DNA of 64,000 bases from the NCBI GenBank assembly GCA_002269645.1, contig NIVC01001405.1, positions 62,001 through 126,000 of the forward strand. The letters are read 5' to 3'. The stretch comes from Macrostomum lignano (taxonomy: Eukaryota). Shown here piece after piece: positions 5,157-13,681 of the stretch. The position numbers and the translations under genes were made by a program. Position 1 is the first letter of the stretch, and each line of letters begins with the position of its first letter. The notes under the pieces are model-generated. The model was not told where the DNA came from and did no database searches. It was given only the letters and a program-made list of their open reading frames with translations.

Positions 5157-6801
5157 TCATCCAGAAGCGGTCTGCTGGATCCAGCTGGTGTACATCTGCA
5201 CTCGAGTGTACACTCCCGGTCGCTGGGGCTTGGCGCAGCCCTCGCCCCAGCTCGTGATGCCCTGCAGGTACCAGACTCCGCCGGACTTGCACACGAGCGG
5301 CCCGCCGGAGTCGCCCTGGCACGCGTCCTTGCCGCCCTGCTCGTAGCCGGCGCACACCATGTAGCTGGTGATGGCGCCTCCGTAATGCGACGCGTCGCCG
5401 CAGATCGAGTTGGGTACGATCGGCACCATCACCTGCAGCAGCCTGGTGTTGTCCCCAGTGCCCTGCGTGCTGCCCCAGCCTGTGGCGAAACAGCTGGCCA
5501 TGTTCGACACCGGCGAGCTCGGCAGGCACACCGGAGACACCTGCGAGTTGAACTGGAACGGCCGGTCCACCCGCATCATGGCCAGGTCCTGGTTAGTCCG
5601 GCTCGAGTCGTAGTTCGGATATCGAACTACCTGCGTCACCTTGCGTCTCTGCAGCGTCGCCTCAGTGCAGTCCCGGCAGTGTCGTCCCGCGTCAACGCCC
5701 CACATCGACGGCGACATGTAGTTCTCGACGCAGTGCGCGGCCGTGATGATCCAGTTAGCGTTGTAGATGCTGCCGCCGCAGAAGTGGCCGCCGAAGAGAC
5801 GCAGCGACACCATCCAGGGCCAGCTGTTCTTGACAGCCTCCTTGCCGCCCACGATGCGAGTTTCGTCTGGCGGGATGGCTGGCGTGCCACAGCCCGAAGG
5901 TGCTGCAAGAGCAAAGTAAATTGCATTGAGTTACTGGTCTGGCGTAATTCAAGTGCAAGAAAGCTGCTATTCGAGTACCGGAAAATCTGTGAGTTGAAAA
6001 GACCTTAAAAGACGTTAACTTACGTGTCCCGCCTCCTGTGCTTCCCCCCGTACTTCCACCGGTGCTGCCTCCAGTGCCTCCACCAGTATTGCCACCGGTA
6101 TTGCCACCGCCGCTGCAGCTTGTCTCATCGCTGCCATCACCACAGTCGCGAAAGCCATCGCACCACCAGCCAGAAAAAATGCATTTGGAGTTATCCTTGC
6201 AGGCAACCTGGCCACTTGGACAGGTAAGCGTGCTCGTGCAGAATTGTTCGTCCGATCCGTCCTTGCAGTCTTTGATTCCGTCGCACTTCCACTTGGATGG
6301 GTAGCAGCCGTTGCCACTGTTGCAGGCCAAGTAGCCATTGGGACAAGCGATTCGCTTCTGGTACTCGTCTTTGGAAACGAACCGGTACCGCAGCTGGAAG
6401 CCGCCTTTCTCCAGGTAAGCATCGCTAGAGAACACAAGAGCCACAAACGAGCTCTGCGTGAGCACCGACCAGTCTAGGGATCCGCAGAATCGGCCCAGCA
6501 CAGGACTCGAATCGTTTCCGCCCGAATAGACAGTCAGGGAATCGCCCGTACACTCGGAAGTGTACTCGAGGTCAAAACTCACCGATGTGATCTCGATGCG
6601 GTAGTCGGGGCTCCAGGCGCGGATGATGTACCGGCAGACAGAATTCGGCTGGTAGGACTTCCGGCCGTAGAGCCGGTGCGACGCTATCACGGTCTGGTCG
6701 GTCTCGTACAGCAGGTTGACGCCGCAGTTAAGTTCGTCGGCAATTGCGAAATTCAATGTCGCCAGTCCTAGAAGCAATGGCAGCAGTTTAGGCAGCCGCA
6801 T
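5157..6801 (-). CDS. Secreted modular trypsin-like serine protease, copy A (signal peptide-CUB-LDLa-LDLa-Gly-rich linker-S1A protease), about 507 aa
   Basis: Exons 6801-6024 and 5902-5157, phase-1 intron gtaagt...ttgcag. Activation site R|IVGG. Triad motifs TAAHC, DLAMM and GDSGGP. Asp189 (KDACQG) indicates trypsin specificity. LDLa motifs CDGIKDCxDGSDE and CDGFRDCxDGSDE. Confidence 0.95.
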
Positions 6802-8280
6802 GGCTACTTTGATAGTACCTATTAGTACCTATAGCAAGGTAAGAAGGCTTGACAACTTGAAATTGTAGCCTTATCTTGAGCTGAGGCTCTGCAAGCAGCC
6901 GATTGTCGCATACTTATACTGCAGTTTAATTGATGTACAATTAGTAAATTGCTCACAAGTGTACAAGCTGCCTGCAATTAAATTTATTTAACGTGCCTAT
7001 CCAGTCACCGACTGAAACTGAGCGGTGACTCAACCAACATTATAATTACTGTATTGACCGTCAATTCAAGACCATTTTTATTACACGCCTTGCAAATTCT
7101 GTCAACAAGTATTTGCACGTCTCAAGCTATGGTTATGAGGGTAAACCCTCTCTGAACCTTGGTTCAGAAAATTGGAAAACTATGCTTTGGAAAACTATGG
7201 AAAACTTTTACAATACGCTCATTTTGAAAAAAAAACTGTTTTAAAATTACGGGCTAATATGGAAAGGAAACTTATAAAAGATCTTCCTCAGGCCAGGCTT
7301 GGTGTCCTGAGTAACAATATCCTGATTAACAATCGTACCTACCTACCTCAGAGCTGTCTTATACTGCGCCCGGCTGCTAATTTATGCGCAATCTTTGCAT
7401 CAGAAAATTTTTTAATTCAGGGCTAGAAAGATTCTCGGACAGAGGTTTGGCGTGACATTGAGCTGAATAGCTAATCCCCAACTCCCTGAGAACTCTCATT
7501 TGCATGGGTAAGCAGGTTTTGAAATACATGTAATTCTGCCGCTATTCTAAATTCCAAAGGGGTCACTTCAAGAAAAACAAAACGGATAAATGAATAGGAA
7601 TGATACTATCTTGGGGAAAATCTGTGAAAAAGATTAACGTTATTGTAAAGGAGTTCTATAGTTCTATGGTTATAAAGCCGCAGATCACCATTTTGAGTAA
7701 GCAAAAATCACATGGCATGGATATGCAAGTGTCATATGAGAACTCTATTGCAGATGGTAGCCCTGCTGGCGTGACCCTTTGACCCGAGGTAGACAGTAAC
7801 CATTTTTAGAAACATCTGTTTAGGATTGATTTTAATTTTCCATTATTAATAGCACGCAGCAACTGCACAGTTTAAACAAGAAATACACCGAAACCTTTGT
7901 ATATGATCCGAGGAAACAGATGGCAGGGCCATAAACACTCCAAAAGGATTCCAGCTATCAAGACAAATAGTTCAGACTCAGTGAGTTCTGCAAAGCATTC
8001 TTTTTGCAGAATTTCCATCACTGATAACCGATTGCTCTGCACGAGTGACGGATAATGAAGCTGAGCTCGTACCTTGATTTTCTGCATCGCTTGCTTCTCA
8101 TCCGGATTATTGCAGCCTCAGCAAAATCTCCCGGCACTGCAGTGAGGCCGTTTTCTGTGTTTCTGCTGTTGAAAGCAATCCAGGTCGATTCAGGACAGAG
8201 TCTCTGAGTTGTTCTAAGAATTCAATCTACGCGACATCATTGTATTTCTCTTTCCATTCTGTCTTAGTGTCTGCCTGCCT

Positions 8281-8510
8281 GCCTGTCTGTCTGTCTGTCT
8301 GTCTGTCTGTCTGTCTGTCTGTCTGTCTGTCTGTCTGTCTGTCTGTCTGTCTGTCTGTCTGTCTGTCTGTCTGTCTGTCTGTCTGTCTGTCTGTCTGTCT
8401 GTCTGTCTGTCTGTCTGTCTGTCTGTCTGTCTGTCTGTCTGTCTGTCTGTCTGTCTGTCTGTCTGTCTGTCTGTCTGTCTGTCTGTCTGTCTGTCTGTCT
8501 GTCTGTCTGT
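8281..8510. repeat. (CTGT)n microsatellite, left flank of the TIR element
   Basis: Pure tetranucleotide run. Confidence 0.99.
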
Positions 8511-8514
8511 GTTA

Positions 8515-11527: not shown

Positions 11528-11532
11528 CGGTA

Positions 11533-11711
11533 TGTCTGTCTGTCTGTCTGTCTGTCTGTCCGTCTGTCTGTCTGTCTGTCTGTCTGTCTGTCTGTCTGTC
11601 TGTCTTAGTGTCTGTCTGTCTGTCTGTCTGTCTGTCTGTCTGTCTGTCTGTCTGTCCGTCCGTCCCTCCGTCCGCCCACCCGTCTGTCTGTCTGTCTGTC
11701 TGTCTGTCTGT
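11533..11711. repeat. (CTGT)n/(CCGT)n microsatellite, right flank of the TIR element
   Basis: Tetranucleotide run in the same orientation as 8281-8510. Confidence 0.98.
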
Positions 11712-12071
11712 CAAATCCTTGCCTGCAGCAATCATTCCGGCATTGACTTTGGAAGTCGAAGCCGGAAGACGTAAATTTCGGAATCGCATTGATCTCGACA
11801 ATGGAGTGGAGCTGTGTGTTTCGGCCGGGAACATTTGGAGGTTAAGGAAATGCTCACGTAAGGAAAACCTTCTCACCATGATTGCATCACTGCGAAAAAA
11901 TAGCACCTGCAATTTTTAATTGTGAGAGAAATAATTAAAATCCAGAAAATTCTACCTGACCTGCAAGTAATTAGCTGATAATTACCCAAGCCGCTAAGAA
12001 TATTTAAATGCGGTTCTGAACGGGTGAATTCTTAATAAGTCTTTTGAATTTCCAAACACAAGTTAAGCACA

Positions 12072-13681
12072 ATGAGTTTAGTTTTTGTGCTGGCACTGTG
12101 TCCAGCCCTGCTGTCTGCAGCCGCTGCCCAAGAAGTGGCGGCTACTGCCAGCGAAAAGAACTGTGGCGTCGATATTCTGTACCAGACGAACCAAGGAGTC
12201 ATCGCCTCCCACCGCCTGTTCGGCCGCACTCCATACGACGCGGACTCGACTTGCCGCTACTTCATCCGCGCCGACGGCCCGAGCTACCACATCGAGGTGA
12301 TTTCAGTCTCATTCGACCTCGAGTACACATCGGAGTGTTCGAGCGACTCTCTGATTGTGTACGACGGCTGGAATGACTCCAGCTCCGTCCTTGACCGCTT
12401 CTGCGGCGGCGGCTCCTGGTCGGTTTTGTCGCAGTCCTCGTCGATACTGCTGGTATTCAAAAGTGATTCCTACCTGCAGAAGTCCGGCTTCCAGCTGCGC
12501 TACCGATTCGTGTCAAACGACGAGTACCGCACCAGAGTGCCCTGCCCAAGTGGCTATATTTCCTGCCGATTTGGAGGATTTTGCTACCCTTCAAAGTGGA
12601 AGTGCGACGGCATCAAAGACTGTCCAGACGGCTCCGATGAGAAGTATTGCTCGATTACGCTGAACTGCCCGATAAACCAGCGACCCTGCAAGGACAACTC
12701 CAAATGCATCTTCAACCAGTGGTGGTGCGATGGCTTCAGAGACTGCTCAGATGGCAGTGATGAGGTTTGTGGAGGCCAGACGACAACAACTGCCAGGCCA
12801 CCGGTGACTACAACCACAGTGTCGCCCATCACCACAACGAAGCCGCCATGTAAGAATAAAACACATCAAAAAGTTTTTTTAGAGCTTCTATTCTTTAATT
12901 ATTAGATTAAAATTTTGTTTAAAATTTCTTTCCAGCACCGTCAGGCTGTGGCAGGCCCGCCATCCCGCCAGACGAAACTCGCATCGTGGGCGGCAAGGAG
13001 GCTGTCAAGAACAGCTGGCCCTGGATGGTGTCGCTGCGTCTCTTCGGCGGCCACTTCTGCGGCGGCAGCATCTACAACGCTAACTGGATCATCACGGCCG
13101 CGCACTGCGTCGAGAACTACATGTCGCCGTCGATGTGGGGCGTTGACGCGGGACGACACTGCCGGGACTGCACTGAGGCGACGCTGCAGAGACGCAAGGT
13201 GACGCAGGTAGTTCGATATCCGAACTACGACTCGAGCCGGACTAACCAGGACCTGGCCATGATGCGGGTGGACCGACCGTTCCAGTTCAACTCGCAGGTG
13301 TCTCCGGTGTGCCTGCCGAGCTCGCCGGTGTCGAACATGGCCAGCTGTTTCGCCACAGGCTGGGGCAGCACGCAGGGCACTGGGGACAACACCAGGCTGC
13401 TGCAGGTGATGGTGCCGATCGTACCCAACTCGATCTGCGGCGACGCGTCGCATTACGGAGGCGCCATCACCAGCTACATGGTGTGCGCCGGCTACGAGCA
13501 GGGCGGCAAGGACGCGTGCCAGGGCGACTCCGGCGGGCCGCTCGTGTGCAAGTCCGGCAGAGTCTGGTACCTGCAGGGCATCACGAGCTGGGGCGAGGGC
13601 TGCGCCAAGCCCCAGCGACCGGGAGTGTACACTCGAGTGCAGATGTACACCAGCTGGATCCAGCAGACCGCTTCTGGATGA
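12072..13681 (+). CDS. Secreted modular trypsin-like serine protease, copy B (signal peptide-CUB-LDLa-LDLa-Thr/Pro linker-S1A protease), about 507 aa
   Basis: Exons 12072-12849 and 12936-13681, phase-1 intron gtaaga...ttccag. Same domains and catalytic motifs as copy A. Confidence 0.95.

Follow-up and report, generated by a model that had tools for sequence, protein, structure and literature searches.

At the Drosophila 87A locus, an adjacent, inverted pair of hsp70 genes is homogenized by gene conversion. In Caenorhabditis elegans, the hsp16-1/hsp16-48 modules and hsp70-7/hsp70-8 are likewise inverted adjacent pairs homogenized by conversion (PMC3966223). Mosaic concerted evolution, in which some exons of old paralogs are kept near-identical by conversion and others have diverged, has been described for the mammalian pairs BMP8A/BMP8B (inverted), DDX19A/B, and TUBG1/2; an elevated G+C content at third codon positions (GC3) of the converted segment is accepted as a side-signature of biased conversion (Carson and Scherer, 2009; PMC2720389). 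The subject here is a 64,000-nucleotide (nt) stretch of DNA from the flatworm Macrostomum lignano (contig NIVC01001405.1 of assembly GCA_002269645.1, forward-strand positions 62,001–126,000; hereafter the window, to whose numbering all coordinates refer unless marked L001), in which two head-to-head serine protease genes carry inverted, nearly identical copies of one catalytic exon behind strongly diverged N-terminal halves.

The Macrostomum pair resembles the mammalian examples in that old paralogs are near-identical in one part and diverged in the rest, with raised GC3 in the near-identical part. Unlike them, it confines the near-identity to one 723-nt block inside one exon of a two-exon gene, its copies lie only 7 kb apart, and the pattern, known here from one species, is repeated in what appear to be homeologous subgenomes of a neopolyploid flatworm. 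With the heat-shock pairs it shares the arrangement of inverted or head-to-head neighbors whose coding sequence would be kept identical by intrachromosomal conversion. However, in those pairs the whole coding region is homogenized, for which dosage is the usual explanation, whereas here only the catalytic half is affected and 32% of the amino acids differ between the N-terminal halves. What seems particular to this pair is that the tract is limited to one domain-encoding block, that the rest is extremely diverged, and that both features are repeated in a second subgenome. It is nonetheless a clean but ordinary example of well-known gene conversion between neighboring copies, and it reveals no new mechanism. 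A literature search found no paper linking M. lignano with gene conversion at this locus; the matches to CUB serine proteases were incidental, in reference lists.

An inverted pair with a near-identical catalytic exon

Both genes have two exons, a phase-1 GT…AG intron, and a 507-residue product. Their start codons lie at 6801 and 12072 with the 3′ ends pointing outward, which bears out the preliminary description of this DNA, according to which the two genes face away from each other. The features of the pair are as follows.

5157..5902, minus strand: left gene exon 2, 746 nt, encoding activation peptide, trypsin-like catalytic domain, and stop (CAG acceptor, phase 1; Pfam Trypsin, E = 9.7e-72)
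5157..5879, minus strand: left arm of the near-identical tract (723-nt core), 2 mismatches with 12959–13681, dS 0.006, GC3 0.87
5880..5902, minus strand: 5′ edge of the tract (left exon-2 nt 1–23), where 4 sites are paralog-specific and, within the paralog type, the same in the window and the second locus
5903..6023, minus strand: left gene intron, 121 nt, GTAAGT…CAG, 40% GC (splice model; no homology to the right-gene intron)
6024..6801, minus strand: left gene exon 1, 778 nt, encoding signal peptide, CUB, LDLa, LDLa, and a Gly/Thr/Ser-rich linker (Pfam CUB, 1.3e-17; Ldl_recept_a, 5e-18, two stretches)
6802..12071, no strand: spacer between the start codons, 5270 nt, rich in simple repeats [(TGTC)n at 8268–8526; an 88-nt tandem repeat at 10049–10537; a (GTCT)-type array at ~11530–11775]
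12072..12849, plus strand: right gene exon 1, 778 nt, encoding signal peptide, CUB, LDLa, LDLa, and a Thr/Pro-rich linker (splice model, Pfam, UniRef match)
12850..12935, plus strand: right gene intron, 86 nt, GTAAGA…CAG, 20% GC (splice model)
12936..13681, plus strand: right gene exon 2, 746 nt, encoding activation peptide, trypsin-like catalytic domain, and stop (splice model, Pfam)
12936..12958, plus strand: 5′ edge of the tract (right exon-2 nt 1–23), where 4 sites are paralog-specific
12959..13681, plus strand: right arm of the near-identical tract (723-nt core), which has the two private variants, G>A at 13276 (silent) and G>A at 13559 (Gly>Arg)

The splice model of the right gene is supported by the UniRef entry A0A1I8GFW1 (M. 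lignano), which equals its spliced product at 100% identity over 490 residues and spans the splice junction. GenBank PAA56791.1 is a mis-modeled left-type gene from another contig, NIVC01002573.1. The two exon 1s (778 nt) and the two proteins (507 residues) are of equal size despite compensating indels (+5/−5 residues) in signal peptides and linkers, an equality that is probably coincidental.

A repeat search returned one inverted pair, 5157–5908 and 12930–13681, of 752 nt and 99% complementarity with 7021 nt between the arms; self-comparison of the 64-kb window gave no second long near-identical inverted repeat. Compared base by base, the arms differ at 7 positions, five of which fall within the innermost 29 nt (5906, 5898, 5895, 5884, and 5880, paired with 12932, 12940, 12943, 12954, and 12958). 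The remaining 723-nt core (5157–5879 and 12959–13681) has just two mismatches, one silent (5562/13276, CGG vs. CGA, Arg in both) and one that replaces Gly by Arg (5279/13559, GGA vs. AGA). Under divergence like that of exon 1, the probability of at most 2 mismatches in 723 nt is 8e-141. The edges are sharp: on the 3′ side, identity reaches the final base of the TGA stop codon and no farther, the following 60 nt matching at the random level; on the 5′ side, the near-perfect tract ends 23 nt inside the exon-2 acceptor (between exon-2 positions 23 and 24), beyond which there is a short eroded zone of 4 mismatches in 23 nt. The preliminary description had given near-identical exon-2 segments of about 720 bp with 2 differences, near 13276 and 13559, bounded by the stop codon and by a point about 23 nt inside the acceptor; the sites were recovered base by base, and the edges agree with the derived splice sites.

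Outside the core, the two genes are very different. Over all aligned codons of exon 1, the nonsynonymous divergence (dN) between left and right is 0.35 and the synonymous divergence (dS) 1.68, with 61% amino-acid identity. The CUB part alone gives a dS of 1.33 at ~68% amino-acid identity, and the two LDLa modules a saturated dS at ~69%. Introns, 5′ and 3′ flanks (400–500 nt of each), and the linker-coding part were scanned for residual homology against shuffled sequences, and none rose above the shuffles (z < 1.5). The core, by contrast, has a dN of 0.0018 and a dS of 0.006. An exon-by-exon comparison of dS, which the preliminary description had proposed, thus sets 0.006 against at least 1.3, and the block of near-identity is sharply bounded and includes the synonymous sites, as interlocus conversion would have it. 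Several of the earlier statements hold in the same measurements: the CUB-LDLa heads, put at about 70% identical in amino acids, are 68% identical; the introns and 3′ untranslated regions (UTRs) indeed show no relationship; and the duplication is old, as judged from an exon-1 dS of 1.3–1.7, the saturated LDLa modules, the dN of 0.35, and the unalignable non-coding parts.

Base composition also separates the tract from its surroundings. GC3 is 0.87 in the core and 0.68–0.69 in the exon 1s (Fisher p = 4e-07 and 5e-06), and it ranges from 0.57 to 0.70 in eight other open reading frames (ORFs) of the window, so that the side-signature of biased conversion is present at p ≤ 5e-06. Total GC is 0.65 in exon 2, up from 0.20–0.47 in the introns and 3′ flanks. 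The CUB-coding part has a GC3 of 0.78, yet synonymous differences accumulate there. The core dS and its GC3 together agree with the earlier proposal that the catalytic domain is homogenized by conversion. Between paralogs, dN/dS in the heads is ~0.2, and between the two loci compared below it is 0.06–0.09. To judge from these ratios, the heads diverged long ago and are now under purifying selection, as is the catalytic domain, for which reason both genes look functional.

The encoded proteases

Each protein matches the Pfam families CUB, LDLa (two stretches), and full-length Trypsin (PF00089; E = 9.7e-72 and 5.5e-72, profile positions 1–220 of 220). The catalytic-triad motifs TAAHC, NQDLAMM, and GDSGGP can be read in both translations, as can Asp189 within KDACQGDSGG, the activation site DETR|IVGG, a cysteine in PSGCG just upstream of it, and the LDLa calcium-cage motifs DGxxDCxDGSDE. 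On alignment, the triad, activation-site, and Asp189 motifs are in register with plasmin. A hydrophobic N-terminus of 20–25 residues, followed by CUB from residue 26–31, reads as a cleavable signal peptide. By profile and motifs, both proteins are classed as S1A (chymotrypsin-fold) trypsin-like serine proteases. From what is known of this fold, they would be secreted zymogens, with a predicted cut after Arg and a specificity for Arg/Lys, and their catalytic domains would remain tethered by a disulfide to the CUB-LDLa heads after cleavage. By analogy with the CUB and LDLa domains of other mosaic proteases, these heads may act as recognition modules or exosites.

The best matches of the catalytic domain in the Protein Data Bank (PDB) are plasmin, TMPRSS2, plasma kallikrein, and enteropeptidase (E ~1e-62). 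Over the full length, the nearest relatives, at 33–39% identity, are “ovochymase-1-like” proteins of molluscs and amphioxus and one transcript. A build of CUB, LDLa, and one S1 domain is found at this identity and 93–95% length coverage in five proteins (P0065, P0085, P0098, P0101, and P0102); P0098, a Logan transcript contig of run SRR33002330 with 39% identity, is uninformative. In the full-length search, only A0A1I8GFW1 and PAA56791.1 exceed 48% identity. A profile search with both CUB-LDLa heads returned M. lignano PAA56791.1 and generic LDL-receptor repeats only, and exact look-ups of A0A1I8GFW1 and of the 231-residue exon-2 ORF gave no further record.

The pair thus resembles the ovochymase-1-like proteins of mollusc and amphioxus and the Arenicola “MASP-related molecule 2-like” protein in combining CUB, LDLa, and one S1 domain, and it shares a mosaic CUB/LDLa trypsin-like build and an Arg-IVGG activation site with matriptase, enteropeptidase, and the MASP/C1r/C1s group. 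Unlike matriptase-type enzymes, however, it has a signal peptide in place of a type-II membrane anchor and SEA domain, and unlike the MASP/C1r/C1s group it has no CCP or EGF modules. Assignment to the type-II transmembrane serine proteases (matriptase/TMPRSS type) was rejected, since Pfam gives no SEA match and the signal-peptide-like N-terminus stands directly before CUB. A true ovochymase or polyserase, which would have several protease domains, was rejected on the single Trypsin stretch that Pfam finds in each protein.

A second locus and the case for gene conversion

The pair recurs in the last 13.4 kb of NIVC01002573.1, the contig of the same assembly that carries PAA56791.1. This second locus, designated L001, is collinear with 3357–17924 of the window (~14.5 kb). 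Besides kilobase-scale indels, the two loci differ by substitutions at ~2% in the flanks, 1.3–1.6% in the two exon 1s, and 1.1% in a neighboring lectin ORF. M. lignano is a neopolyploid whose three subgenomes (S, L1, and L2) diverge by 1.9–2.4% in single-nucleotide polymorphisms (PMC10733133). Because a divergence of ~2% fits this range, the window and L001 are read as homeologous or large-chromosome variants. L001 has the inverted pair as well, with arms at L001 4440–5191 and 10924–11673, in the same orientation as in the window and with each head joined to its own 3′ flank. The edges are also those of the window: the tract ends at the stop codon, and within the first 23 nt of exon 2 the same 4 sites part left-type from right-type copies in both loci.

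Some peculiarities of L001 concern the pair itself. The left-type gene (L001 ~10880–11680, aligned to window 6060–5157) has three 1-nt homopolymer deletions: the linker has G5 for G6, and exon 2 has C for CC at its position 338 and C3 for C4 at its position 675. The deletions are either long-read consensus errors or signs of very recent pseudogenization; the resulting frameshifts explain the garbled C-terminus of PAA56791.1. The same gene has a linker 12 nt longer and 2 extra signal-peptide residues. An insertion of ~1035 nt (L001 3213–4253; window 13868–13873) lies ~190 nt downstream of the right-gene stop, and the spacers of the two loci are strongly different in content as well as in length, the latter by more than 1.5 kb (window 8526–11530 vs. 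L001 6570–7994).

The left (L) and right (R) exon 2 from the window (W) and from L001 (X) allow a four-copy comparison. Exon 1 groups strictly by paralog, with ~35% L/R divergence against 1.3–1.6% W/X. In the core this grouping is lost: L/R differences amount to 0.28% and W/X differences to 0.14–0.41%, none of the sites is paralog-specific or locus-specific, and the tree is a star on four singleton substitutions, two in the right copy of the window and one in each L001 copy, three of the four being changes from G/C to A/T. Between loci, dS is 0.040 and 0.058 in the exon 1s and 0.006 and 0.012 in the exon 2s; 3 synonymous W/X differences are observed in exon 2 where 15.4 are expected from exon 1 (P = 0.00016), and over all sites the counts are 4/1444 in exon 2 vs. 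22/1553 in exon 1 (p = 0.0006). The introns and 3′ flanks beside exon 2 show 0.7–5.3% W/X differences, and dN/dS of the heads between loci is 0.06–0.09. Within each locus, 1 and 2 synonymous L/R differences stand against at least 7.5 expected if the last conversion were older than the split between the loci (P = 0.005 and 0.02), and it would follow from this shortfall that the tract has been homogenized since the split, in both loci or between them. The statement of the preliminary description that conversion “keeps homogenizing” the domain fits these counts and the recurrence of the same tract edges in L001.

The anatomy, the contrast in divergence, the raised GC3, and their repetition in L001 are probably best explained by mosaic concerted evolution, with interlocus gene conversion recurring in the catalytic exon alone. 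A break in one catalytic exon would be repaired non-reciprocally from the inverted copy 7 kb away, and the copied tract would reach only as far as homology survives. Since copying needs homology, the tract would be limited by the unalignable intron and linker at its 5′ end and by the unrelated 3′ UTR at its 3′ end. So sharp a 3′ edge could arise if homology never extended past the stop codon (the original duplication may, for instance, have ended there), or the UTRs may have decayed early and been excluded since; as the flanks retain no residual similarity, either origin would fit. Conversion would have happened more than once, including after the split of the homeologous subgenomes, and probably it either took place between the homeologous loci as well or was GC-biased. 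A crossover between the inverted copies would invert the spacer rather than delete it, so that such a pair can last for long. Within-locus conversion alone would not suffice, since it leaves the distance between loci unlowered; the low between-locus distance of exon 2 may reflect homeolog exchange, GC-biased removal of mutations, or unusual synonymous constraint, among which the counts are too small to choose. As an internal control, a tandem ABC-transporter pair in the window, 6.6 kb apart, is 70–76% identical throughout and has no homogenized block, so homogenization is not general for neighboring paralogs here.

Several observations weigh against recurrent conversion. The core tree is a star with too few substitutions for locus-specific fixed differences, so that recurrence, like the hint of homeolog exchange, leans on rate arguments from small counts. 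Strong synonymous constraint on exon 2, with its GC3 of 0.87, could mimic part of the signal, and with up to six copies that are nearly identical, polishing with short reads may have removed some real differences. The homopolymer deletions in the left-type gene of L001 suggest that at least there the assembly is not error-free. Lastly, neither the full-length nor the head-profile search found an orthologue outside M. lignano.

The star of singletons is also the expected outcome of a single conversion or exon replacement shortly before the subgenome split, after which the low divergence of exon 2 would reflect synonymous constraint or a low local mutation rate; the high GC3 could then be due to codon selection, and the small counts leave room for such an account. 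It is nevertheless an unlikely one, because the 3 synonymous W/X differences fall short of the 15.4 expected from an exon 1 only ~100 nt away, because the adjacent introns and 3′ flanks, at 0.7–5.3%, argue against a low local mutation rate, and because the CUB-coding part gains synonymous differences in spite of a GC3 of 0.78. Somewhat more doubtful still is a wider form of exchange, in which all catalytic-exon copies (2 paralogs in up to 3 subgenomes) would make up one pool that converts within loci and between homeologs, with the heads evolving independently. The catalytic domain might be held in such a pool by having to keep matching a common activator or inhibitor, and rare arm crossovers might then flip the spacer as well.

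Recurrent conversion can also be set against readings that do without it. Of Mlig_3_7 scaffolds, 36% are reported to be chimeric, and reads multi-map between the three subgenomes (PMC10733133); with the homopolymer indels of the left-type L001 copy, this raises the question of whether one exon 2 was overwritten by the other during assembly or polishing, or whether the pair is a chimeric long-read palindrome. The same structure and edges nonetheless stand on two contigs that are ~2% diverged and differ by kilobase-scale indels, each copy keeps private variants, and both the Arg variant and the right-type splice junction recur in A0A1I8GFW1. Moreover, short arms, a non-palindromic spacing of 7 kb, and edges at coding landmarks are unlike read-chimera palindromes, and polishing cannot take ~35% divergence to 0.3%. 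With four exon-2 copies in two loci that differ by four singletons, an assembly artefact is very unlikely. Still less credible is a history without recombination, whether a young pair whose exon 1, introns, and UTRs diverged extremely fast or an old pair whose exon 2 was frozen by purifying selection. In such proteases no part is more constrained than the catalytic domain, and exon-2 dN is low throughout; however, selection on the protein cannot hold synonymous dS at 0.006 beside a saturated exon, and fast divergence of the heads is contradicted by a dN/dS of ~0.2, saturated dS, and unalignable introns. The read-chimera palindrome, selection-only, and young-duplicate readings were accordingly rejected on the evidence of edges, synonymous sites, and introns. 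The preliminary description had further suggested that the 7-kb center could flip and swap the heads between 3′ UTRs. Inverted repeats of such length and identity are competent for homologous recombination, and a flip would barely change the coding sequence. Both loci, however, are collinear and in one orientation, with the heads on their own 3′ flanks, the spacer has no recombinase gene or other feature of a switch, and most conversion events resolve without crossover. The suggestion thus found no support, and a regulated or frequent switch is hardly to be believed, although rare inversions would be compatible with the two loci examined.

Genomic surroundings and implications

Elsewhere in the window, dense repeats lie at 698–1101, 3599–3844, 8268–8526, 10049–10537, and ~11530–11775, the last three of them in the protease spacer; they are a perfect (ACT)135, a 41-nt unit x6, (TGTC)65, an 88-nt unit x5.6, and a second GTCT-type array. 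The lectin ORF shared with L001 (16690–17520, plus strand; 1.1% substitution divergence) has a weak match to the C-type lectin domain (E = 1.9e-05). The tandem ABC-transporter genes are ABCA-like and lie at 19899–24556 and 26104–31172 (plus strand), with ABC_tran twice and ABC2_membrane_3 in each long ORF. A non-LTR retrotransposon with intact-looking ORFs occupies 34396–39554 (minus strand), with endonuclease and reverse transcriptase at 36126–38735 and RNase H at 34829–36142; it is flanked by two 28-nt tandem-repeat arrays (34408–34733 and 39217–39541) that are 95–98% identical. Anoctamin-like exons are found in 48406–53179 (minus strand; ORFs 48406–49218 and 51756–52616), interleaved with long tandem arrays (a 45-nt unit x29 at 49308–50584; 19-nt units at 52183–53179) in a region of strong negative GC skew.

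The protease pair offers a compact case of domain-limited concerted evolution, in which one pair of genes has a saturated tree for its heads and a zero-length tree for its catalytic domain. For this protease family in Macrostomum, dating, orthology calls, and dN/dS scans will mislead if they do not treat the exons separately. Short-read mapping and expression counts over exon 2 cannot separate the copies, for which only exon 1 and the 3′ UTRs are copy-specific. If the catalytic exons do form one exchanging pool, the result would be a “one engine, several heads” cassette that is maintained naturally. The pair could also serve to measure ectopic conversion, and perhaps subgenome exchange as well, in a neopolyploid model that is amenable to transgenesis.

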